A DNA stretch of 13,348 nucleotides, taken from Amoeboradix gromovi X-113. Taxonomy: Eukaryota > Fungi > Sanchytriomycota. The translations under genes were made by a program, and so were the position numbers. The stretch is from contig JADGIF010000235.1 of assembly GCA_018985225.1 (NCBI GenBank), forward strand, positions 1 to 13,348. The letters are read 5' to 3'. Of this stretch, positions 1-13,348 are shown piece by piece; position 1 is the first letter of the stretch; every line of letters begins with the position of its first letter. The notes beneath the pieces are model-generated. The model was not told where the DNA came from, made no database searches, and saw only the letters and a list, made by a program, of their open reading frames with translations.

Positions 1-185
1 GAGCATCTAAGCAAAAGGTGGATTTTCTTAGACGGTACTCTTTTCTAGAGTCATTTTGTAATGTTATACTAAAATCATTACTCTTATCTATTCTAGTTTT
101 TACAGAGTAGTAGTGATATTTTATTTGAAATAAAGATTGGATGAAAGAGTAAGAGAATAGCTGTACAGAATATTTATTTTTGAAA

Positions 186-339
186 TTTCGATACAAAAAG
201 TTGTTTATTTTCCTTTATACTCGTCAACTCCGCAACTAGCTAAATGTCCACTCGTCTCTTAAATCCATAAAGTAATAAAGCTGAAATAATGTTCCAAGTT
301 GCTACAGAAAGTTAGTCCAGTTTTTATATTTGATGTCCC
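186..339 (+). repeat. Left copy of a ~155-bp non-coding repeat, inverted relative to 13181-13348
   Basis: Manual alignment: 186-339 (tttcgatacaaaaag...tttgatgtccc) matches the reverse complement of 13181-13348 with 7 substitutions and two indels (13 nt and 1 nt extra in the right copy). It ends 16 nt before the YOS9 ATG. The outer boundary cannot be fixed because the partner copy runs off the window. Confidence 0.97.
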
Positions 340-355
340 AACTGTACTCTGAAAC

Positions 356-1237
356 ATGATTATCTTCTCTATCGCCTTTTCAGCGTCTGTCTTTTCTGAT
401 CTGGTTAGCCCACAGCTCTTTGACTTCAAATTTGTGAAAAGTGAATCAATTCCAGAAAACACAGTGGTCTATAAAACTGAAAAAAGAAAATTTCATTGCC
501 AAATCCCGCGTAGCCCGGATATCATGACTACTCTCACACCAAGAGATGATATAGACTATTCCCAGTACATTTATATCCCCAAATGTCTGTACTTGAACAA
601 CGGTTGGTGGACATACGAGTTTTGTAATGAAATTATCAGACAGCTACATCTTAGCAATAACATTGAAACAGATGCATATGTCCTAGGTAAACAGAACTCC
701 AATTATAAGGTACAGGAACGCAGTGGCCAATTTGCAATAATCAAGGTCTTTGACAGAGGTACAACCTGCGATGTAAATCAAAAGCATCGCCAGGTGCAGG
801 TTGAATTTTCTTGCTTTCTGAATAACGAGAAGCTCAAATTAAATAACATTTATGAAGAATCTACCTGCCTGTACAAAGCTACAGTTCATGTTCCTGAGCT
901 TTGCGCTGTTGAAGGATTTCAAAAGAAGACCAATACCAATGATATTATTTGCTATTACATTGACGACCAACCTCCGAAAATTAAAGAACCTGTTGCCAAG
1001 AGTGAATCGCAAGATGAATCTCCAGAAATGGAGACTACCGAGAACTTAAAGAGCGACGGTCACTTGGATTTGGGTAAATTATCAGAAATTGTAAATAAGA
1101 TCATTAGTCAGAAAGACAATATTCAAATGATTCTAATGGATGATGAGAAAAACATCGATTTGGAAAAGACCATAAATGAGCTGTTGGCCGAAAATAAAAA
1201 GAAAAAGAAAACGTCAGAGAAAAAAGAGGAACTTTAG
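356..1237 (+). CDS. YOS9: OS-9/Yos9-family ER lectin (MRH/PRKCSH domain, ERAD glycan sensor), 293 aa
   Basis: Short N-terminal hydrophobic signal (MIIFSIAFSA). MRH motifs CLYLNNGWWTYEFC, IRQLH, YVLG, GTTCD..HRQVQVEFSC and IYEESTCLY..VPELC, with the mannose-binding Q-R-E-Y residues apparently present. C-terminal KEEL is a KDEL/HDEL-like ER retrieval signal. Confidence 0.88.
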   Translation: MIIFSIAFSASVFSDLVSPQLFDFKFVKSESIPENTVVYKTEKRKFHCQIPRSPDIMTTLTPRDDIDYSQYIYIPKCLYLNNGWWTYEFCNEIIRQLHLSNNIETDAYVLGKQNSNYKVQERSGQFAIIKVFDRGTTCDVNQKHRQVQVEFSCFLNNEKLKLNNIYEESTCLYKATVHVPELCAVEGFQKKTNTNDIICYYIDDQPPKIKEPVAKSESQDESPEMETTENLKSDGHLDLGKLSEIVNKIISQKDNIQMILMDDEKNIDLEKTINELLAENKKKKKTSEKKEEL

Positions 1238-1241
1238 AACC

Positions 1242-1253
1242 AATAAATTTACT
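1242..1253. terminator. Back-to-back putative polyadenylation signals of convergent YOS9 and MDM31
   Basis: 14-bp intergenic gap (1238-1251). AATAAA on + at 1242-1247 directly abuts AGTAAA on - at 1248-1253, which overlaps the MDM31 TAG. Confidence 0.5.
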
Positions 1254-2901
1254 AAATCATTGCATTATGTTGCATATTGCTTCTATCCAAATACCATTCT
1301 TGCCTTCCTCTTAAATAGTCGAACAGTCTTAGCAAGCTAAAAGCCATTTCCCCCAAACTCCAGATACCCAACCTCTTCAATTTCATTGATCTTAACCTTT
1401 CGTCTTGATACAGCTTAAACAAAGATATTCCCGCTGCCTTCGATATGCAGTCCACTAGACCGCAATTGTAAATACTCCAAGCACCATTAAAGTCTGAGGT
1501 TTCCATAGTGAAATTAGACACTATAGATACATTAGTATGATGATTGTTTAGGAAACCTACGATGGGACGAGCGAACGCATTCCATCCAAATATATTGTTT
1601 AGATTAGTAGGAACATCAGCCTTCAAATCTTTCATTTTAAGATACATCGTAAAATTAATAGAAGTGCTATTAGGTTCAATATTAGAGTATTGCGATAAAT
1701 CTTGCACTTCTTGGGGGATGCCTAGTTTAGATATTTGCCAAGTAATTTCTTTTAAATCACTCACGAAAGAATGGTTCGAGCCTGTTGGAACATGTATTAC
1801 AGCATTTAAATCAACCGTTCCCTGATTTATCCATCCTAATGGACCAGTAGCACCATAATTAAACAGATCTATGGGCAAATTATCAATTTTAACACTAACT
1901 GACTGAAATGGTAGATCAGAATTATTTTCAAGATTATGGAGGCTAAACAGACAGTCATCGTACATTCCGGTAATAGAATCACTTTTCAAAATATCGTGTA
2001 CAATCCAGTTCTTTCTAAATGTCTTACAATGACCATTAAACACATCTATTTTAATCGGCCTAAAATCAGCATAAATCATGTTTATTGATAGATCAGAGAC
2101 CTTCAAGCCATCTATAGCAATATCAGGCTCATTCGGGTCCAGCTTAGCACCTAACTCAATAGAATAATCTACAAATCTCTTATCAAATTCACCTCTGATT
2201 CCTTTGAGCTCAGCACTCGTAATAAGCCCTTTCCCAAACAAAAAATTGATCAGTGATAGTTTAACTTTGACCTCTTTTATGGTTAGATCGAGCAAAGTGT
2301 GGTTTACTTGGGAATAATCGATCTCGCTTGTTCCAGATGGATTTGCGGAATAGTAATAATGGTCTCCAACATTACCTTCATCTGGCCTAGACTTGGAAAC
2401 AGTAATATCTTTAAACACTATCTTACCCTCTTTAAAAGAAGGAATAATAGCAGACTCAAATATAACAGTCGCATTCAACAGCGCTGTTATATGGCGTCCT
2501 ACTAAATAAGCAATCAACTCTTGGAATTGTAAAGAGTTAAGTATAATAAGCAACAACGATATAAAGGTAGTAGTTCCCACTAGTAGGAAGAAGGTATGAG
2601 ATAAAAACAACCAGCTTAATAACGCAAACAAATCATCCGAAGTCCAACGCTTGCGATTCCTTTTTAATGAGTAAATAATCCTGGATTTAAAATTGTTATC
2701 GGTATGGGTGGTTTGCTTATAATTTAATTTTGACGACATGAAATTCCGGCATTGAATAAATGGGTAACTAAATATTGTTCTTGGTGCGCGACATTGCATT
2801 GGAAAGTTACATTGTCTGATAAGTTTAGGTCGTATTTTATTCATTCTAGGTATAGAACGACTTATAAGGCGCCGAGAAATGAAATGCAGTGATTTGATCA
2901 T
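1252..2901 (-). CDS. MDM31: Mitochondrial distribution and morphology protein, Mdm31/Mdm32 family (inner membrane), 549 aa
   Basis: Family-like motifs DDLFALLSW..VGTTTFISL..N..QELIA, FESAIIP.FKEGKIVF, GMYDDCLFSLH, GPLGWI..GTVD, RPIVGFLN, FNGAWSIY..GL and KRLGIWSL. The ORF-track start at 2955 is GTG. The first ATG (2901) begins an Arg-rich, acid-free presequence-like segment (MIKSLHFISRRLISRSIPR). Confidence 0.9.
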   Translation of the reverse strand: MIKSLHFISRRLISRSIPRMNKIRPKLIRQCNFPMQCRAPRTIFSYPFIQCRNFMSSKLNYKQTTHTDNNFKSRIIYSLKRNRKRWTSDDLFALLSWLFLSHTFFLLVGTTTFISLLLIILNSLQFQELIAYLVGRHITALLNATVIFESAIIPSFKEGKIVFKDITVSKSRPDEGNVGDHYYYSANPSGTSEIDYSQVNHTLLDLTIKEVKVKLSLINFLFGKGLITSAELKGIRGEFDKRFVDYSIELGAKLDPNEPDIAIDGLKVSDLSINMIYADFRPIKIDVFNGHCKTFRKNWIVHDILKSDSITGMYDDCLFSLHNLENNSDLPFQSVSVKIDNLPIDLFNYGATGPLGWINQGTVDLNAVIHVPTGSNHSFVSDLKEITWQISKLGIPQEVQDLSQYSNIEPNSTSINFTMYLKMKDLKADVPTNLNNIFGWNAFARPIVGFLNNHHTNVSIVSNFTMETSDFNGAWSIYNCGLVDCISKAAGISLFKLYQDERLRSMKLKRLGIWSLGEMAFSLLRLFDYLRGRQEWYLDRSNMQHNAMI

Positions 2902-3055
2902 GGAGATTTTGAAGTTTTGAGAATGTTCCCACTTGCTTGTAATATCATAATACACTAATGGTCTTATTATTCAAGATTCCATAGTAACAAGACTATAAAA
3001 CGGAATGAGACTTGTAATAACCTCAATTTTCAAATTTATTGAAATAAATATGAAT

Positions 3056-3241
3056 TTATTTACTTTTATCCCCACAATGCTTCATATAAAGAGTCAACAG
3101 ATATCCATTAAATAATACTTTCTCTTCTTCTGTCTGTGCTATTAATCGATTACGCAGATATTCGCAACCAACATCTGTCTGAGGTTGACCAGTCATTATT
3201 CCACTTAAAACTGTTAAAATAATAAATATCAGTGAGGACAT
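3056..3241 (-). CDS. Small putative secreted protein, 61 aa, two Cys, no recognised family
   Basis: ATG at 3241 (the track start at 3244 is TTG). Signal-peptide-like MSSLIFIILTVLSG followed by a helical-looking segment bounded by Cys. The TAA stop overlaps AATAAA, as in neighbouring genes. Confidence 0.55.
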   Translation of the reverse strand: MSSLIFIILTVLSGIMTGQPQTDVGCEYLRNRLIAQTEEEKVLFNGYLLTLYMKHCGDKSK

Positions 3242-4135
3242 CAATTAAGAACTATTCAGTTTTAAAGGAGAGCCCAAACGAAAAGAAATTGACGGAAATA
3301 AGAACACTTTCGATGAAAAGCTGAATGGTGGTAAAATTTAATGATCAAATGAAAAGGAGTTGATGAGTTATTAGGATTTAGGACCTCAAATAAAAACCGT
3401 TTGAAAATTTAGTATAAAATTCCAAATAGACCATTGCACCCCGGAAATAATTGTAAACACCACAAAACTCAAGAAATGCGTGTTTTGCACATAGTGCTTG
3501 TATTGAAGCAGGTAATAACTCATAGAAAGTCCTGATTTACGAGAAAATAAATAGTTTGTACAAAGAAACTGAAAAAGTCTGTCGCTACATTACAATGGTT
3601 GCTCGAAGTTCTTAATACACTGAGACGAGATTGATTAAACATGCCCATACTTCAAGTAAATGTTCACTGCTGCCTTATTTCTCTATTCGCTTGTATATAG
3701 GAGTTTGTTCGTGTATATGTCTCCAAATTGGTTTTCTTTGAGACTTCACACCTTTTACACGTGAGATCAGTAAATGCTTCAGTTCATACAACCAATCTGT
3801 TTCCTTTTTGTTTGCGCTTTACTTAGTTATTAACTTAGTTTCTGTACATGTTAATTTATGCAGGTAAGAAGTCTAAAAAGAGAGTTTACAGTAAAGATAT
3901 AGCTCACGCAATCATGAGAAATAATTTATTCGATTAAAATAGAAACCTGAGCTTTGCAATTAATCTGTAATTACTATTAGTGAATGAAAAAAGACAGATA
4001 ATTAGGCCACTGTAACGCCAGATGAACTAGCGGAGGTATTTATATGCAAACCTTGATTACTATTTCAATAATACATAGTATAATGATACCAGATCAGACA
4101 AGCTCCAGTTTATTTACTAGGAACGAAAGTCGAAT

Positions 4136-7100
4136 CTATTTACTTTGGCTGAGAATTTCGTGTATTTTTAAAATAACATTTTCGATGTAAATTTTTGGTA
4201 TTTCTTGTTTCTCAATTCCTAAAAATGCTAATGATGGCGTTGCTTCGCCCGTTATTCTCAACTTGGGATCTATAATGGTCTTTGTTGATGCATAGTTGTA
4301 CTTAATTCTTGGTGACCTTGTATACTTATTAGCCTCTTTGAGATACAAGCTTATTATGTCTTGAATAAATTGATAATTTTTTAATTGCAGCGTCACATCT
4401 ATTATATTCGATTCAAACTCAAAATCGTAGATCAAGTCCAATTCGCTCATCCTCACATCTGCTAATATCTTGATATTTGGGATGTTACCCAATACTTTAC
4501 TGCTATTTGTCCCCTTGAATGGTTCCAAAATAAATCTGTCATTTAAAACACTCTTTAGAAGTTGTAGCCTCTCTATTTTCATACTTGTATTGTATTTGCT
4601 CCCTTTATAAACCTGTACATAATTCAACCTATCAACCTGAATAGTCATCACATCTCTGTTACTCAATGTAGAAGAACCCAAGATAAATTCAAAATAGTCC
4701 AATTGCACCTCGATATTGTGTTCCGATCCATCTGATTTTGTTCCCATAGTGTCTTCAGTTGTGTTCCATGGCATTTTATTCACAATTTCTAGTAAAGCAT
4801 AAATGTTGGGTATCAATACACTGCTACTGCATCCATATAGCCTGTCTATACGCATAAATATTTTGTCGGAACTCTCCATTTTGAATCCACTCATTTGAAG
4901 CAGTAACACTATCTCTAGTTGATATTTCGATGCTACCTCTAGATGTCCTATGTTTCTCTCAATTAAATCTGTATCCTGCATGTTGATCATAAATGTATTC
5001 CTTCCTTTTATATCCAATATTATGCTACTTATCTTGTTATTGTTTATATCCAGAGCCATTAGATGCCCACTTCCCATCATTTCTCTTGCACTAAGATCCA
5101 AGTCTATCTTACCGATGGTCATAAATGGCTTAAATGAAGTGTTGCTGCTACTTTCAGAATCACTTTTCATCGAAGTCGCAATGATTCCTTTGAAGAGGTC
5201 ATACAACTCATATATTGATTCAAGCTCTACGTTTCCTGTTATTTCCTTTATTGATGGAAACTCCACTACTCTTACGCTCATCTCTTTAAACTGGTTGCAT
5301 ATTATCACTGTACAGATTTCGAATGTAAACGGGATCATGGTGAATCCTGAAAAGTCGATTTTAAACAAGTGCTGTTCGTATGCCAGTTTAAGGTTTGCAG
5401 AAGATATTATTGTATTAAAGCTATTCCCAGCCGCATAGTTATTATCTTTAGTTGTCCAAATCTCAATTATATATCCCACATCTAATTCTCCATTTAAATC
5501 ACTCATAATTAGCTCATTGTTGCTATAATTGATACCAGTTACCTCTATTTCATTTATGTAGTCTACTTGTACCATTTTCAGCCTAAACTCATTGATTCCT
5601 ACACGTAGATTTAGGTCCTCTGATTTTGCAACATCCATCGTATCCATTATGTCTATTATGTGAGCATATAAACCCATTAACATTTCTAGTCTCTCTTGGT
5701 TTAAGTCTATAGTCACGATATCTACCTTTATCTCCTCTTTATATTTTAGATCCTTGACTTCTACAAATTGCTTATTATACATTGATCCCTTGTTGATGCT
5801 ACTGCTTATATACACGTATTGCATGTGCAGAATGCCTTGTTTTCTACTCATTGTTGGTATATGTACCAATATGATGTTTCCATCTGTGCTGCATTTTATG
5901 GATATGTTGCTTCCTTGAATATCGGGCAACGAACTGCCGCTGTCTTTTGCTAGCATGCCTTTATGAACTTTGCTGTTTATGCTGTAATATCTTACTAAAG
6001 TTCTTATCCATTCAATCTGCACATAAATATCACAACTGTTTATAGTAATTAAACCATCACTTAGCACCGCTGCGCTGCTCACGCATATTAGTTTATGACT
6101 GATTTCTATGTTAATGCTATAACGATTGACTATTGTGTCAATTGCGGCGGTAAGCACGCTTTCATTGATTTTCATTGCGCAATTTGCAATGATATTTGTT
6201 ACGCCTGCTGAGCCAGAAACAGTGCCTGGTATAAATGGGATAGCATACTCTGCTACCAACTGCATTAAATCCCCATATTGACATTCAATTTCAACTGGAA
6301 CATGCATCAACAAAATATTTGTGTTGTGATACATTTGGATCCCACTAGTATTGATGTTTAAAATATGATTGAATATTGCAGTGGTGCATGAGCAGTAGAT
6401 ACCCTTGTTCATCAATAGAATGAAATTTAAACAATGACCAACTAGGGGTATTATGAATTTGTTAATGACCACGGTATAGCGAGAAACGGATGAATTATTA
6501 TTGCTTTTAAGCTCAAAGTCGGACACACTCTCTAAAATGCCTCTTACGCCTTTATACATTTCAATTAAAGTGTTAACATTACACACATTGATTGTGTTTA
6601 CACTTACAACATGGTTAAATAGAAATGTGTGAGTAATACATAACAACTCGGAATGGTCATGCATATTTAGCAATTGAATCAAATGTATAGATAACGAGTT
6701 GTTGTACATTAAGTGATTTAAATGCAGAATGTATGATAATAAAGATATTTGCACATGATGGATTGAAATCAGAAGCATTGTATCTTCGTTACTTGTGTTA
6801 GCAAAAGATATGGAGGAAAATTGATGATATAAGCGGATCAAATCTGCCATTCCACCTAACGGATCCACAACAAGCTCATGAACAGAAACATAAGTATTCG
6901 CATTGTTAATAACAGATAGATTCGTAATGCTAATAGAGCTAACAATACATTTGCTTCTATATAAATGGGCATGGCATAGTAACAAACTGAATTTCGAGTT
7001 ACTGGTCATTACATCGACTATAGGAATGCCGTAGGTTAGCGCATTGATAAGTTGTTTGTTCACTGACTGGGACCTGAACTGGGCAAGTGAGGGATGAATT

Positions 7101-10100
7101 CTAATGATATAGACGTTGTTAAAGAAGTTGAAGGACGGAACATCATGCGGAACAAACTTGAACTTAAATTGGTCCAAAAAATGAGATAACAAAGTTAAAA
7201 TGCTAGATAGTTTAGCATACATTGGATAGAGCACTGAAATAAAATCTATGTCCAAGTTAAAAGTTAGTAAATCGCATTTTATTAAGGAGAGATTAGTGGC
7301 TATAATCTGATTGTTATTGCATGTGGCGCTAATAGATTTGCAGCCCTGGGAAGACAATTCACTGATGAAGCATAAAATAGAATTATCCTTGAATTTCAAC
7401 TGAATAGTAGTTTCCAAAACTACCAGAAAATGAGATGGCTGTGCATTAGGTGCAACATTAAAGTAATTAGAGCAATGTTGCGTGTATTTCTGCATTAAGT
7501 TGAGCCATATCAGCTCATTGTTGCAAAGGTAAGGTAGTGCAATGTGTAGTGGATCAATATTGATAATAATGTCCATAAATTGAATTTGGTTAGTGATATA
7601 TTGAGGACTGTTTAAATAGACAGTAGCAGGAGAATGATTCAAGAGACAATTGGAAAGAGACACGGACACAAAATCACTGTTAACTGTAATAAATGGGAAA
7701 AGTGTACCATTGAACATATCAGCGTAGAGGAGTACTCTGAGATCTATTGTGCTAGGATTGTTAGGGATAACTTCAGTGATAGATATATCAACTGATTCAA
7801 TCATTATATCAAAGGTACTTGTGGAACTGGATATAGATAGAGCGTTTTCAAAGTCGTCAATTTGATGTTTAAACAATAAGAACCACTTGAGAAGATTTAA
7901 TAAATTTTGATAAGACACTTTCCCAGCTAAGCAGTCAGTAGACAAAAAGTGATTGGCTTTTAAACTGTTAAAAGTATAACTAAAATTTTTCAAGTGTAGC
8001 CCCGAACAATTTGCAACTGGAACATCTATTGAGAACATGGAAGATTCAGACGAGTGTATTTGAGCATTCAACAGTGGTACTTGAACATTTACAAACAGAC
8101 CATCAATTGTCGTATCCCATGTACACGGTAATGACACAATGGAGTTGTTTAACCTTAAAACAACAGACATGTTGGATGATTTATTATTCTTCAACAGTCG
8201 GGGCTTGCCATCCACATACTCCTGAACTGTGAGGGCAATGGTGAGCAGATTGTCCATAGCATTTGATAGATATTTGATCAAGTGCCCGAATACTGCGACT
8301 TCTCCATCACTAGCAATGATATTTAGATCTAGTATATTGCTTGTCATTGTAGACATATATGATCCGTTCATTAATATGCTGCCGAATGCCATGTATTGCA
8401 ACCCATTCTGATATATGTTGGCCTGGCAAAATAACGGGTTGACTACAAGTTTGCCGCAACTAGCATCAATGGCAAATGTTAATGATTCCTGAACAATCCT
8501 AGTAAACTCAGTTGTGAATTTCATGTTTAAATTAGTAATAACAATTTGCAGATGAGAACTGTCATGCATTGAATTATGAGTGTCAATTATGGTGAGATCA
8601 TTCATATTAAGTAACAACTGACCCTGATCTACTTTTATTACTATGCTGTAATTACTAGGTACGAAAATCAATTCATCATTAATTGAAAAATCAGAGAATG
8701 CATCAATAAGTAGATATAAATGGTCCCCCAGCAAGAATCCATTTATGTTGCTAAAATTGAGGTTAACTGATGTGTCTACAACAGCAGAGTATTTGCATGC
8801 GTACTCAATCCTTAAAGCATCACTAGACAATAGTAACTCATGGTTGAAACTGGTGTTTACCACAATATCTGTGAGTGTTGCAAACACAATAAAGTCAGTG
8901 GACTCCCCTTTATAATGATACAAGTCAATAGTGAATACACTGTCTTTGTCGGTTTTTATATCAATCCAGCTATAAGGGAATATTTTATCGATTTGAGTAG
9001 TATTTAAAAAATCATGTGTAAAGTTACGAAAAGGAAATCTGAAATCCGTACTGCCTGTACAATTGACCTTTATTCTTGTGAACTGCACTTGCCTTTGTAG
9101 ATCTACAACCCTATTGTACTCTGACAACTCTCCTATAAAAGTCTGAAAATATTTTCTCATTAATCGTCTTCGTTCTCTTTCAGCAAAAGGACCATATCTA
9201 ATGGTCGGATTCTTTATGTCTATCTCCAATAAATCAAAAACAGAGTCTGATATGTTATCGTCGGTCCATTTACCAAGCATTATATCATATTGATAATTAA
9301 TTTGAATTTCATCAGACTTTAATATTTCATATACAGCTGCATACTCCTGAATGTTTGCCTGATTTGCTACTGCATATCTATCCAACCCCATCCATTCTAC
9401 CTCGTCGGGTGCATCCAAATTATCATAATCAATATTTGTTTGCAATGACACTTTTCTACTTATTTTGCGCAACAATGTACCTAAAGTTCTGGTAGTAGTA
9501 TGTATATTTAAGGTATGATTACTGTGATTGTGTACAGGTATTTCTGAGTCGATATTTGGAATTAATTTCATTATACATTTCGACGCAGTTAATGTAACCA
9601 CTTGGGCATAATTTGTGTTATTGGATGCTTTAAATGATATTATACATTTACCGCTATTGAAATAAAAAGACAGCAAATGCTTTGTTGCCTTGTTTCCTAT
9701 GATTAAGCCGCATTTATCAATTGCCAAGGAAATTGGTAAAACCCATAATAAAAATGTCGGATCGTACATTAACTCGTCCACATCTATTAAAGATATTTCA
9801 GACCTAGATTGCACCTTGTTGTATAGTTGATTGTACAACGAAGTGTTATTGTAAAGAAATATCTCCATTCCTTTGATTTTGATACCCAGCCTACAAGGTA
9901 GAGTAGGGTCATCCAATCTCTCTTCCTTTATAGCATGAATAAACCAGTTAAGATACTTGTTATTCACATTAACAGGCAAGGACTCAACATGTTGCACCTT
10001 CCATAGCCAATATCGCAGAGTAATATTCATCTTGTGAACAGTGATTTTAAATCCTGGTGAGGTTATAGTCACGTTTTTCAAAGTAACAGAACCTGATAAT

Positions 10101-10282
10101 AATGCTATCTTTAAACTTTCTATAAATATAAAGTGAGGTAAAAATGCGCTAGTAATTTTAGACAAGAGCAAGCCTAGCAGTCGATTAAAGTAAAAAAATA
10201 TGAATAAGAAGCAGAACGATAGTACCAAGCCATAAACAAGGAAGGTGTAAACATTCAAATCTTTTGTAAATAAATCAAACAT
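4136..10282 (-). CDS. CSF1: Csf1/BLTP1 (KIAA1109/Tweek)-family bridge-like lipid transfer protein, 2048 aa, intronless
   Basis: N-terminal TM anchor followed by FFYFNRLLG, SL.IALLSG.V..KNV, ITLRYWL, LPCRL, GMEIFLYNN..LY, EWMGLDRY, EYA.V..IL and YGPFAERER. C-terminal DPKLRITGEATP. Beta-strand-like middle that is strongly diverged. Confidence 0.88.
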   Translation of the reverse strand: MFDLFTKDLNVYTFLVYGLVLSFCFLFIFFYFNRLLGLLLSKITSAFLPHFIFIESLKIALLSGSVTLKNVTITSPGFKITVHKMNITLRYWLWKVQHVESLPVNVNNKYLNWFIHAIKEERLDDPTLPCRLGIKIKGMEIFLYNNTSLYNQLYNKVQSRSEISLIDVDELMYDPTFLLWVLPISLAIDKCGLIIGNKATKHLLSFYFNSGKCIISFKASNNTNYAQVVTLTASKCIMKLIPNIDSEIPVHNHSNHTLNIHTTTRTLGTLLRKISRKVSLQTNIDYDNLDAPDEVEWMGLDRYAVANQANIQEYAAVYEILKSDEIQINYQYDIMLGKWTDDNISDSVFDLLEIDIKNPTIRYGPFAERERRRLMRKYFQTFIGELSEYNRVVDLQRQVQFTRIKVNCTGSTDFRFPFRNFTHDFLNTTQIDKIFPYSWIDIKTDKDSVFTIDLYHYKGESTDFIVFATLTDIVVNTSFNHELLLSSDALRIEYACKYSAVVDTSVNLNFSNINGFLLGDHLYLLIDAFSDFSINDELIFVPSNYSIVIKVDQGQLLLNMNDLTIIDTHNSMHDSSHLQIVITNLNMKFTTEFTRIVQESLTFAIDASCGKLVVNPLFCQANIYQNGLQYMAFGSILMNGSYMSTMTSNILDLNIIASDGEVAVFGHLIKYLSNAMDNLLTIALTVQEYVDGKPRLLKNNKSSNMSVVLRLNNSIVSLPCTWDTTIDGLFVNVQVPLLNAQIHSSESSMFSIDVPVANCSGLHLKNFSYTFNSLKANHFLSTDCLAGKVSYQNLLNLLKWFLLFKHQIDDFENALSISSSTSTFDIMIESVDISITEVIPNNPSTIDLRVLLYADMFNGTLFPFITVNSDFVSVSLSNCLLNHSPATVYLNSPQYITNQIQFMDIIINIDPLHIALPYLCNNELIWLNLMQKYTQHCSNYFNVAPNAQPSHFLVVLETTIQLKFKDNSILCFISELSSQGCKSISATCNNNQIIATNLSLIKCDLLTFNLDIDFISVLYPMYAKLSSILTLLSHFLDQFKFKFVPHDVPSFNFFNNVYIIRIHPSLAQFRSQSVNKQLINALTYGIPIVDVMTSNSKFSLLLCHAHLYRSKCIVSSISITNLSVINNANTYVSVHELVVDPLGGMADLIRLYHQFSSISFANTSNEDTMLLISIHHVQISLLSYILHLNHLMYNNSLSIHLIQLLNMHDHSELLCITHTFLFNHVVSVNTINVCNVNTLIEMYKGVRGILESVSDFELKSNNNSSVSRYTVVINKFIIPLVGHCLNFILLMNKGIYCSCTTAIFNHILNINTSGIQMYHNTNILLMHVPVEIECQYGDLMQLVAEYAIPFIPGTVSGSAGVTNIIANCAMKINESVLTAAIDTIVNRYSINIEISHKLICVSSAAVLSDGLITINSCDIYVQIEWIRTLVRYYSINSKVHKGMLAKDSGSSLPDIQGSNISIKCSTDGNIILVHIPTMSRKQGILHMQYVYISSSINKGSMYNKQFVEVKDLKYKEEIKVDIVTIDLNQERLEMLMGLYAHIIDIMDTMDVAKSEDLNLRVGINEFRLKMVQVDYINEIEVTGINYSNNELIMSDLNGELDVGYIIEIWTTKDNNYAAGNSFNTIISSANLKLAYEQHLFKIDFSGFTMIPFTFEICTVIICNQFKEMSVRVVEFPSIKEITGNVELESIYELYDLFKGIIATSMKSDSESSSNTSFKPFMTIGKIDLDLSAREMMGSGHLMALDINNNKISSIILDIKGRNTFMINMQDTDLIERNIGHLEVASKYQLEIVLLLQMSGFKMESSDKIFMRIDRLYGCSSSVLIPNIYALLEIVNKMPWNTTEDTMGTKSDGSEHNIEVQLDYFEFILGSSTLSNRDVMTIQVDRLNYVQVYKGSKYNTSMKIERLQLLKSVLNDRFILEPFKGTNSSKVLGNIPNIKILADVRMSELDLIYDFEFESNIIDVTLQLKNYQFIQDIISLYLKEANKYTRSPRIKYNYASTKTIIDPKLRITGEATPSLAFLGIEKQEIPKIYIENVILKIHEILSQSK

Positions 10283-10708
10283 GCTCTAAGAAAAATAAAC
10301 GGAGGGGGTAAGAGTGGCGAGTAAAATATATACTCTAATCGAGTGAGTAGATGACGAAAACCCTACTAAACAGTACCTGAGTCTGACTACTACAAGACTT
10401 ATGAGACCATCTCTGCACCGTTGGAATCATCCTTACTGTATCAAATTCAAAAAAGTATGATCTCGTGTATGGGATTTTTCGCTATAAATGAGCTACGCTA
10501 CGAATATAAAATATTATGTAAAATTGGTGAAAGAAGTAACCGATATACTGTGGTGGCGTTACTTACAAGCGCAACTGAGAGGACTACTGCAGCATGCTTC
10601 ACTAGGCTTGTAGGCTGTGTCGCAACTAAAACGCTATTAAATTACCAATCGAGTTCTCGAAATAAGACTTGCATGAAACTATCAAAGTTAGTACCAAAAT
10701 ACTATTTA

Positions 10709-11590
10709 TTAAGCCCTATTCTCTGCCGCATAAGAATTAGCTTGTCCTGGGTGACCGCTAAACTCTTGCGACTGCTCAGTATCACCAGCAATATCATTGG
10801 TTTTTGGATTTTCCCCATAGTATGAATGCTGAGAACTAGGTTTCCTTGTCAGAGTTTCTGAGCTCAGCTTTCTCTGATTATAATCGGTGCAGAAAATCCC
10901 CTTAAATAAAGTTCCTACGACTATAGCAGAACAAATTGGAGCAACCCAGTAAACCCATTGATTTGTCCAAACTCCAGAAACAACAGATGGTCCGAAAGAT
11001 CTTGCTGGGTTCATAGAAGCACCTGTTAACTCCTTGGAAATCAAAACACCAACCACTACACTAAATCCAATAGAGATTGGAGCCAAAATAATGCCGTTCT
11101 TACCTGTAGTGCACACTACTACAAACAGCAAGATCGATGTTATCATAAACTCCAATAAAAACCCTTGACCATCCGTAATATCAGGACCAAGTGTGGTGGC
11201 ACTCAATGATTGCCATTTACCTACACTTCCTCGGAATAAAGCAGCACCAACTATAGCAGCAACCAGTTGAGTGAGGATGTACAAAATGCAAATGGCTGGA
11301 GATATGGATCTCTTAATTGCCAAAACTAGCGAAATTGCTGGATTAAAATGCCCACCACTAATTCCAGAAAATGTGGACACAATTGCAACTAATGCTAATC
11401 CTTGAGTGAACGCTGTGACCAAGGCTGCAGTACCAGCATCGGTGTTCATGTACTGTTTCGGCACTACAGCGGATGCGCTGACAGCGTAGATAAACAGCAA
11501 GGTGCCTATAAACTCAGCTAGTATTCTTCTCCAAACTGTTGACACAGGCAATTTTTTGTATTCGGTTTCTTTGAATGGATTTTTAATCAT
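10709..11590 (-). CDS. Aquaporin / major intrinsic protein (MIP), 293 aa
   Basis: AEFIGTLLF in TM1, SGGHFNPAIS (NPA1), LEFMITSIL, TGASMNPARSFGP (NPA2), WVYWVAP, six hydrophobic segments. Confidence 0.97.
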   Translation of the reverse strand: MIKNPFKETEYKKLPVSTVWRRILAEFIGTLLFIYAVSASAVVPKQYMNTDAGTAALVTAFTQGLALVAIVSTFSGISGGHFNPAISLVLAIKRSISPAICILYILTQLVAAIVGAALFRGSVGKWQSLSATTLGPDITDGQGFLLEFMITSILLFVVVCTTGKNGIILAPISIGFSVVVGVLISKELTGASMNPARSFGPSVVSGVWTNQWVYWVAPICSAIVVGTLFKGIFCTDYNQRKLSSETLTRKPSSQHSYYGENPKTNDIAGDTEQSQEFSGHPGQANSYAAENRA

Positions 11591-12178
11591 TACCTGTCAC
11601 AAATTTAGACTGCGTGAAAGTAGATAACTATAAGACTAAAATTAGAGTACTGCGATTATAAATTGATTCCCGAAATAGACGTGAGGACCTCGATTGAATA
11701 AATCATTCATCGCGATTTAATTTCTTCGCTCTAGTACTTATGCTACAATTTATAGTTCACTAAAAATGTGATTTCAGTTCTTTTCATCTACCTCAAATGT
11801 CTTCAAATTGTCACAAACAGAGTATGCCAAACTTGAAGAGATAACCAAGAAGTGTTACCTCAAGTCTTCTGCACCCAGAAGTTAGTCTAAATGAAACCTG
11901 ATACAAAGAGATGGAAAAACATGATTTAACATAATGAAGCACTGACTAGCCAGTTGTGTACTGATTGTAGAACTCTTAAGATAAACAATTTGGAAACTGT
12001 ACAAAATGTCATTTGGAAGTAGACAGAGACCATATGACAGCAAGCAAGACATACTTGAAATACACGCATCCGTATTTAATCGTGCCTCAAAATATTAGTG
12101 TGAGCGATTGGCTCTCTGACCTTCTCTGTCGAAACTATTGATTTCTGGTAAATTACGACTTTAGATGGGAATTATGCT

Positions 12179-13142
12179 TTACTTAATTTTGTTTGTGTAA
12201 ATAATTCGATGTACTAATGATAAATCAAAAACGTGTCTCTGTAAATGAAAATCCAATTGAGTAGGTAGCAGTTTTGAATACTCTCTAGTCTTTTCAATCA
12301 AATAAGCCGCATCAAGACTTGGAAAGCTCCTAAGTAACTTCACCGGTGAAGGATGTTCTAGTATATCTTTTCTCATCTTGATTAGCTGAGCTGCAATGCA
12401 TATTATATTCAAATGTACACCATGTGCAAAATAAAAATCCCACAGCTTCAATACTTCTGAGAGGGGTGGGGTAGCTGATGATAGTGTCATTATAGCTAAG
12501 TTAGAATGAATTACAAGGGAATGCGTATATCTCTGCGGAAAGACTTTTTGATCTTAAGTAATTGTACAGTTCATTGTCTAGATGCTCCAAACAAGAATCC
12601 AACAAAAGAGCACCGCACCGGACACCCTCTGTGTTCTTTTGAACATAAGTGGGGCAGCTATATTGTATTAGTTGTGAGAAGCTGTAAAAAGCGTCGACCT
12701 CGTTCATGACAAACAGAAACGGAGCTGCCAAGGCATTCATTCCTTGTACGTAATAAAATAAACATTTTGTAGAATCCGATGTAAAAGAGAGATTTTTGTC
12801 CTTCATGTCCCATACGAAGGCATTTAAAGTTCGCAACAGCATATGTTCATCAACTACTAGCTTGAATTGTTCATCGGTTTTTAACGTTCTATGTGTGTCG
12901 TTCTTAATCTTCCCATATGCTTCACTGGCACCTTTCTGAACAAGTGTAATATATCTTTTAGATGAAACTACCTTGATTCCTAGTAATGCCTTCCAAACCA
13001 TGCCTCTTTGTGAATTTGATGACGCGTCTATTTTTTCATTGCTTAAGGTGACTCCATTTAATATCTGTTCAATAATTTCTCTGGTACTACTATCAGAGTC
13101 TTTTATCGTTTTGTTTATTTTCTCTAATAAGATGGTAGACAT
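12179..13142 (-). CDS. BUB2: Bub2/Cdc16 TBC-domain GAP (mitotic exit / spindle position checkpoint); two exons, 13142-12515 and 12495-12179, 314 aa spliced
   Basis: TBC motifs RGMVWKALLG, IKNDTHRT (Arg finger), YVQGMN (Gln finger), EVDAF, CPTYV, TPPLSEVLKLWDF and GVHLNI are spread over two adjacent ORFs. Removing 12496-12514 fuses them in frame (628+317=945 nt) and gives the family-like AEIYAFPSIMTL junction. Confidence 0.92.
12496..12514 (-). other. 19-nt spliceosomal intron (phase 1) in BUB2: GTAATTCATTCTAACTTAG
   Basis: GTAAT donor, CTAAC branch point, TAG acceptor. It contains the stop of the upstream ORF, and its removal restores the frame and the conserved FPS junction. Confidence 0.87.
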
Positions 13143-13180
13143 TTTTCCAAAATCTTGGCTTGTTTTACTTTTTTACATAC

Positions 13181-13348
13181 GGGACATCAAATATAAAAAC
13201 TAGACTAACTTTTTGTAACAACTTGGAACATTATTTCAGCTTTATTACTTTATGGATTTAAGAGGCGAGTGGACATTCAGCTAGTTGCGGAGTTGACGAG
13301 TATGAAAGGAGAATAAATAACTATTATAAATAACTTTTTGTATCGAAA
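13181..13348 (-). repeat. Right copy of the non-coding repeat, running to the window end
   Basis: Reverse complement of 186-339 with a 13-nt insertion (ttatttataatag on the minus strand, resembling a local duplication) and a 1-nt insertion. It ends 38 nt before the BUB2 ATG. Confidence 0.97.

Follow-up and report, generated by a model that had tools for sequence, protein, structure and literature searches.

An inverted repeat at both ends of an Amoeboradix gromovi contig very probably represents two truncated copies of a high-copy mini-transposon of likely Fanzor ancestry

The contig JADGIF010000235.1 of the sanchytrid fungus Amoeboradix gromovi X-113 (assembly GCA_018985225.1), whose whole length of 13,348 nt is here called the window, has the arms of an inverted repeat at either end, with six genes between them. 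We analysed this repeat and conclude that it very probably stems from two independent copies of a mini-transposon that is highly repeated in the genome and that interrupted the assembly. Each arm would thus be the left-end half of a separate, unrelated insertion of a non-autonomous DNA transposon of ~515 bp, namely a miniature inverted-repeat transposable element (MITE), and the six enclosed genes are ordinary chromosomal neighbours and not a unit. As judged from sequence, the ~515-bp unit is in turn probably an internally deleted transposon of the Fanzor type, bounded by terminal inverted repeats (TIRs) and with its right end situated after the stop codon of the nuclease; as such it would appear to be a new family of a known kind, the Fanzor-derived MITE. 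The parts of the element in the window are the following.

1-339, plus strand: left copy, spanning positions 177-516 of the 515-bp element and cut short where the contig begins; 96% identical over 340 nt to the copy at L022:1143-1659.
2-145, minus strand: probable decayed remnant of a Fanzor/TnpB zinc ribbon, ...KEYRLRKSTFCLDA at 40 to 2, truncated by the contig start; it aligns with the proteins P0008, P0011 and P0003.
310-339, plus strand: TIR of the left copy (...AGTTTTTATATTTGATGTCCC), containing TTTTATATTTG, which resembles the budding-yeast autonomously replicating sequence (ARS); the terminal pattern was matched 1,574 times genome-wide.
340-345, plus strand: flank of the left copy, AACT and then GT, in the family-wide pattern A-N-N-T-G-T.
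13175-13180, minus strand: flank of the right copy, which reads GTAT and then GT outward on this strand; 13181 is the exact point of divergence of seven independent contigs.
13181-13348, minus strand: right copy, spanning positions ~362-516 of the 515-bp element, containing an insertion of 13 nt and cut short where the contig ends.

A repeat search of the window places the inverted arms at 183-346 and 13174-13337, with a further match of 186-208 to 13326-13348, and a gapped alignment of 183-343 with the reverse complement of 13177-13348 gives 149 matches. This alignment bears out the ~95% inverted repeat reported in the original prediction, together with its two indels (one of 13 nt and one of 1 nt), but the substitutions inside the element number six and not seven. 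Also as reported, the last element base (of a CCC) lies 16 nt from the ATG at 356 in the left arm and 38 nt from the ATG at 13142 in the right arm, and TTTTATATTTG is present at 322-332. The left copy had been placed at 186-339, which is too short, the whole of 1-339 being alignable with a full-length copy and also covered by 42 other examined copies. It is the left-end half of the unit in the orientation of the nuclease. The right copy aligns with L022 in two blocks, of 93.7% and 100% identity, and both copies have their left ends facing inward.

With the 164-nt arm as query, 783 first-look candidates were obtained from the genome (10,549,678 bases in 1,319 contigs), and the identity was 94-100% in all 40 copies that were scored. 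Copies situated inside contigs showed a second, inverted match of 31 nt to the tip of the arm, 300-500 nt upstream, and the complete unit of ~515 bp extends from GGGACA to TGTCCC, starting with GGGACAYCAAATATAAAAACT and ending with its inverted form, AGTTTTTATATTTGRTGTCCC. TIRs of ~30 nt (GGGACAYCAAATATAAAAACTRGAC...) are found inverted at both ends of every complete copy; we examined 19 complete units with both termini, which measure 283-517 bp, or 680 bp with a minisatellite. The original prediction had seen neither an internal TIR nor a target-site duplication, both of which were missed because the 13-kb block was treated as the element: each ~515-bp unit has TIRs of its own and A-N-N-T flanks. 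A search with the 21-nt terminus, allowing up to two mismatches, found 763 forward and 811 reverse matches in the genome, 1,574 altogether, as against none for the reversed control, a similarity well in excess of chance. With two termini per unit these matches correspond to ~790 units, that is, one per ~13 kb and ~4% of the 10.5-Mb assembly. The earlier suggestion of a non-autonomous multicopy element was thus correct, whereas the idea that a cis element divides the genome into 13-kb units gives way to a simpler one, the spacing being the mean distance among ~790 dispersed copies, which equals the N50 of the assembly. Among 13 complete copies taken without selection, the last 165 columns show a pairwise identity of 90%, as against 86% for the remaining columns. 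A subfamily possesses an extra insert of ~170 nt, a 13-nt minisatellite of variable length with ATGAATTAGTACT-like units (L025:~1760-1870, L015, L017, L018 and L048:5250-5420).

The repeat had also been proposed to explain the assembly breaks, and this is correct, as the contig both starts and ends inside a copy, being cut at element position 177 on the left and at ~362 on the right. The same is seen across the assembly: 17 of the 30 best copies fetched are truncated by a contig end, and of the first 100 exact matches to the terminus, one in four is located no more than 520 nt from a contig start and is oriented as a truncated copy would be. The published assembly (10.5 Mb, 36% GC) was made with SPAdes in single-cell mode and has an N50 of 13,376 (PMC8371127), which matches the mean spacing of the repeat. 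Short-read, single-cell assembly with SPAdes cannot resolve a 515-bp repeat of ~800 copies, and contigs consequently end inside copies. For a further view of the right junction we used the Logan contigs of the sole public run holding this DNA, compared with window positions 11400-13348; this is probably the source run, so that it amounts to an independent assembly of the same data. One Logan contig of 12,887 nt reproduces 11400-13203 with 0 differences, crosses the boundary at 13180/13181 and stops 23 nt inside the element; the seven others that diverge at 13181 come from the same set. Past 13203 there are only fragments of ~55 nt, whose summed depth is thousands-fold that of the unique contig, and the reads offer hundreds of alternative continuations. 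Since the junction is crossed by a separate contig which then gives way to fragments, the boundary is real and it is the repeat that breaks the assembly. Over 13155-13348 the summed k-mer depth of the element fragments is ~4,700x that of the adjacent unique contig, a figure summed over variants in an amplified single-cell library and hence not a copy number. The true number of copies could be above the ~790 seen in the assembly.

The flanks of the unit may point to a 4-bp target-site duplication. Among the 19 complete units with paired ends, six carry, directly next to GGG...CCC on the outside, a perfect direct duplication of 4 bp (AAGT, ATAT in three cases, ACTT and ACAT), one shows a duplication of 6 bp and four show one with a one-base mismatch. 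Across 76 ends the outside sequence follows A-N-N-T, with A as the first base in 67 and T as the fourth in 70. In the 48 ends of the type that faces the genes in the window, A is found in 39 and T in 46, followed by G in 42 and T in 33; the opposite end of the unit shows no G-T bias beyond A-N-N-T. This family-wide A-N-N-T-G-T outside the gene-facing end accounts for the GATGTCCC-nnn-TGTA motif with which both arms had been observed to end. Boundaries of the form TG...CA are excluded by the register of the duplications, which fits GGG...CCC. Intact duplications are commoner than chance predicts, and those that are missing could reflect ectopic exchange between copies or chimeric joins in the assembly. 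Such joins of two loci are possible across a 515-bp repeat of ~800 copies, which calls for caution when synteny is read from this assembly.

What the unit once encoded is suggested by its longest open frame. It contains no long ATG-initiated open reading frame (ORF), and its longest ATG-independent frame has 137 codons. When stop codons are counted in the four full-length copies that lack frame-breaking indels, a single frame stands out with 2-4, as opposed to 9-21 in each of the other five. The open frame is on the minus strand relative to the orientation of the unit, opposite to the neighbouring genes. We used the 137-codon stretch of L022 as query in a phmmer search against 1.8 billion representatives and recovered ten short protein matches. 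Five of these are A. gromovi ORFs located on copies of the unit and four are environmental; the tenth, to a 700-aa mollusc protein labelled coadhesin-like (38% identity in eight stretches), was taken to be a spurious repeat match. In the public A. gromovi proteome (EukProt EP00835_Amoeboradix_gromovi), P0001, P0002, P0006, P0008 and P0010 are frames called on unit copies.

The Pfam model PF07282 (Cas12f1-like TNB) matches four sequences related to this frame with E-values of 1e-5 to 3.5e-5, namely P0003 (environmental), P0008 (A. gromovi, 256 aa), P0011 (environmental, 298 aa, 65% identical to P0008) and the environmental locus L085, and the matches fall in the stretch that is homologous to the unit frame. 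In L085/P0011 and in P0008, the motifs RuvC-I and RuvC-II, a zinc ribbon (CxxC...CxxC) and RuvC-III occur in that order. This is the arrangement of TnpB/Fanzor nucleases, and the decayed frame of the unit would correspond to the C-terminal RuvC/zinc-ribbon part of one. The L085 frame reads GIDPGV ... FWGDGSFN ... NEDYTSKHCSVC ... KCNFCLDAQRP ... FERDMGSSSFILKRG (ending in ERD) and is followed by a stop codon; 24 nt past this stop lies the terminus CTAGTTTTTATATTTGGTGTCCC, which is the same as that of the 515-bp unit, and then ATGA. Across L022 and L085, the stop codon precedes the ...GGTGTCCC terminus by 21-24 nt. The strand of the relic, taken together with the position of the right terminus after the stop, would make the window arm the left end, on the 5' side of what was once the nuclease gene, and as a result the two genes next to the arms, a Yos9-like and a Bub2-like gene, would stand head-to-head with the relics. 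The window itself retains ~48 codons of a mutated zinc-ribbon segment, in which a C of the CxxC has changed to S. We propose that internal deletion of a Fanzor-carrying TIR transposon would have given rise to the 515-bp unit, the relic of the nuclease being presumably dead by now; the longest relative in the A. gromovi genome, at 256 aa, falls short of an intact nuclease. As for L085 itself, the environmental scaffold with the best relative, its first part (L085:1-217) is a fragment of a bacterial-type ABC ATPase which runs directly into the nuclease frame at GIDPGV, so that the scaffold is chimeric or, failing that, the insertion has lost its 5' part.

The unit may depend, or may formerly have depended, for its movement on a cut-and-paste transposase that acts in trans and generates 4-bp duplications, as with Fanzor elements of the Sola2 type. 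Sola2-type Fanzor1 elements have short TIRs and 4-bp AWWT target-site duplications (PMC3627910), and both the A-N-N-T flanks and the exact duplications of the unit resemble the 4-bp duplication of this type. Fanzors are known from non-autonomous elements that retain the transposon ends only (PMC10530073), and Sola has no Pfam model (PMC5751038). The genome also harbours 29 copies of a transposase with the DUF7869 domain (PF25273), e.g. L079:2412-4472 (C556), some with a C-terminal homeodomain and divided into several lineages that are only ~40% identical to each other. The DUF7869-homeodomain transposase was rejected as a parent of the unit, as the terminus-like sequences near it are inconsistently oriented and the junction is not conserved. 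This was judged on the copies in C556, C908, C811, C1105 and C558, with coordinates only considered for C422, C576 and C787. Termini occur near the transposases at about the rate expected by chance for one terminus per 6.7 kb; the arm-to-transposase arrangement of C558 is not repeated in C475, and the repeat of the C811 subfamily starts ~50 nt before the ATG, without such a terminus. Likewise rejected was a longer element in C367 with a variant terminus, which encodes only an unassigned frame of 521 aa.

Several observations weigh against the interpretation of the arms as two independent copies of a Fanzor-derived MITE. The outer ends of both window copies lie beyond the contig, and their independence is inferred from the family. 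The PF07282 scores, at 24.3-26.1 bits, are just below the Pfam cut-off of 26.3 bits. BLASTP, tblastn and hhalign comparisons of the unit frame with the other Fanzors of the genome gave no significant match; in particular, tblastn with two Fanzor proteins against the 13 complete units yielded nothing better than an E-value of 0.19. A search of PDB sequences with P0008 found no match, and the AlphaFold model from an alignment of five sequences was unusable (predicted local distance difference test, pLDDT, of 43). No transposase-bearing parent with the termini of the unit was found. Finally, intact duplications are seen in only about one-third of the units, which is rarer than the ~12% pairwise divergence would predict.

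Other explanations for the repeat fare considerably worse. That the arms are solo long terminal repeats (LTRs), left behind by LTR-LTR recombination of a retrotransposon, is suggested by the high copy number, by the presence of Ty3/gypsy pol genes in the genome and by ends that become TG...CA when the unit is extended by a base in either direction. However, the duplication register disagrees with such ends, TIRs of ~30 nt are atypical of LTRs, the unit holds a TnpB-type coding relic, and no gag-pol is flanked by a pair of units. Furthermore, the one complete pol (C217) has downstream of it a polypurine tract and then an LTR of another sequence (TGTTATGAC...), so that this origin is highly improbable, and Ty3/gypsy was rejected as the parent. 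The element in question (L046:19-4314) has an uninterrupted gag-pol frame of 1,431 aa with a zinc knuckle, reverse transcriptase, RNase H and integrase, along with its own LTR, and further Ty3/gypsy fragments are scattered over about 15 contigs. We see just as little room for the notion that the two inverted copies delimit a mobile or physical entity of 13 kb, be it a cargo-bearing composite transposon, a linear mini-chromosome or the result of programmed fragmentation, the last two of which had been raised in the original prediction. The inverted orientation of the copies and the fact that the window is a whole contig are in its favour. Nevertheless, the contig ends at two different internal positions of the element and not at its termini, telomeric repeats are absent from it, the reads continue in hundreds of alternative ways, and over half of the sampled copies stand at contig ends across the assembly; what lies between the arms is a set of unrelated housekeeping genes and two older relics of another transposon family.

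Equally hard to sustain is the possibility that the ~160-nt arm is a multicopy gene for a structured noncoding RNA, such as a guide-RNA scaffold. Among the best-scoring copies the arm is indeed the best-conserved part of the unit (94-97%), and the Fanzor guide RNA is encoded at one transposon end (PMC10530073). Yet that end is the right one in TnpB/Fanzor elements, whereas the arm is the left, and the advantage of the arm in conservation is small once copies are taken without selection (90% versus 86% for the remainder). The earlier suggestion of such an RNA also fails on other grounds: folding of the arm is no better than that of shuffled sequences (z-scores of +0.63 and +0.97), and neither the window nor the full unit has an Rfam match up to an E-value of 1. 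A scan for tRNAs found nothing. For the 196 nt of the right end, a region outside the window and the place where a guide RNA would be expected, the folding z-scores are -2.55 (L022) and -1.17 (L028) in two copies.

A possible role for the unit in the expression of adjacent genes would touch directly on the two genes that face the arms in the window.

356-1237, plus strand: Yos9-like lectin gene with a PRKCSH domain (Pfam PF07915, E-value 9e-9), starting 16 nt outside the left copy.
12179-13142, minus strand: Bub2-like TBC/RabGAP gene (Pfam PF00566 on each of two exons searched separately), starting 38 nt outside the right copy.

The two frames of the Bub2-like gene are joined by a 19-nt intron (GTAATTCATTCTAACTTAG) at 12496-12514 on the minus strand, and ORF-based protein models would be cut at this point. 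It is conceivable, though we consider it unlikely, that the left end of the unit has been exapted as a cis element, serving as a putative promoter, transcription start or 5' untranslated region of the abutting gene. This is compatible with the MITE origin favoured above, as the copies could be both regulatory cassettes and transposon relics. Consistent with it are the short distances of 16 and 38 nt in the window, a Yos9-like ATG that is followed by the signal-peptide-like MIIFSIAFSASVFS and is probably a genuine start, and a TATA-like TATAAAA in the terminal repeat, ~13-20 nt from the end. Of 50 element ends whose flank extends for 700 nt or more, 28 have the start of the nearest long ORF facing them, 18 have its stop and four have no such ORF; the distance is within 100 nt for 12 of the 28 start-facing ends (measured to the first ATG) and for three of the 18 stop-facing ones. 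The preference for 5' flanks proposed in the original prediction survives only as this weak trend, since 28 against 18 is not significant (two-sided p about 0.18). Moreover, the trend is the same at both ends of the unit, distances to the first ATG are lower bounds, and the spacers of this genome are so short that any intergenic insertion falls near an ATG. Readings of the repeat as a replication origin or a boundary are not supported; the 10/11 ARS match sits in the AT-rich TIR of a transposon in a fungus that is a sanchytrid and not a yeast, and is given no weight. More speculative, and rather doubtful as a combination, is a two-part reading in which left ends have been co-opted as host promoters or 5' leaders (e.g. 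that of the Yos9-like gene at 16 nt) and in which, separately, the one-sided AC-ANNT (in the orientation of the nuclease) would be a footprint resembling a transposon-associated motif, left by past RNA-guided homing.

The A. gromovi genome contains a further population of Fanzor-related sequences. A search for PF07282 gave at least 560 first-look candidates, and all 150 that were scored were significant; examples are L058:1236-1835 and, on the minus strand, L065:1417-3126. These loci are mostly mini-elements of ~600 bp (such as that of L058) that keep only the tail of the nuclease and ~150 nt, and C542 has an open frame of 569 aa with TNB and HTH_OrfB_IS605 domains. Two old relics of the ~600-bp kind, 71-86% identical to the copies examined, lie in the window at 3526-3819 and 11909-12089, filling the other large intergenic gaps of the window, between the Csf1 stop and the Mdm31 start and between the aquaporin and Bub2 genes, respectively; the second has about 60 first-look relatives genome-wide. 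That the 515-bp unit belongs to this TNB-bearing family was considered and rejected, there being no shared sequence or ends.

Our literature search turned up no study of transposons or Fanzors in sanchytrids and no report of either mini-Fanzor family; the genome paper never uses the word 'transposable' and mentions neither of the two (PMC8371127). They deserve mention in accounts of this genome. In a reduced fungal genome of 10.5 Mb, the ~790 copies of the unit make up ~4%, and the second family adds several hundred copies. Together, these families determine how long the contigs of the public assembly are, give rise to spurious short protein models in its public proteome and may have produced chimeric joins across repeats. 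The apparent six-gene cassette of the window is itself an artefact of where the short-read assembly broke. Beyond these practical consequences, the genome may offer a plentiful natural record of Fanzor ends and of the sites that they targeted.

Among known systems, the closest to the unit are the non-autonomous Fanzor1 elements with Sola2-type ends, such as DFa-1/-3 and PPa of dictyostelids (Bao & Jurka 2013, PMC3627910). Both are bounded by TIRs, carry or retain a piece of a TnpB-like (Fanzor) gene, are derivatives without a transposase and have similar AT-rich 4-bp duplications, AWWT in the case of DFa/PPa. However, in the unit almost the whole nuclease gene has been deleted as well, leaving a 515-bp MITE, its TIRs are ~30 nt long as opposed to 12-21 nt and unrelated in sequence, and the two middle bases of its flanks are not restricted to A/T. 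Furthermore, no Sola transposase with matching ends was found, and the copy number relative to genome size is far higher. The other A. gromovi mini-Fanzor family resembles the unit in its TnpB-type tail joined to a transposon end, its hundreds of copies and its intergenic location, and differs in having no DNA similarity to it, different ends, no long TIR and TNB scores of 50-74 bits, compared with 24-26 bits in the relatives of the unit.

Like MITEs in general, the unit is short, non-coding, bounded by TIRs, present in very high copy and situated in gene-adjacent spacers, and such elements are classic breakers of short-read assemblies. In contrast to most MITEs, which are deletion derivatives of a transposase gene, it keeps a piece of a passenger RNA-guided nuclease, and its intact duplications are rarer than expected. 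Solo LTRs, such as delta and sigma of yeast, are likewise dispersed, gene-adjacent repeats of a few hundred bp that break assemblies, but the unit is set apart from them by its boundaries and duplication register, by its TnpB-type relic and by the absence of any LTR-gag-pol-LTR arrangement.

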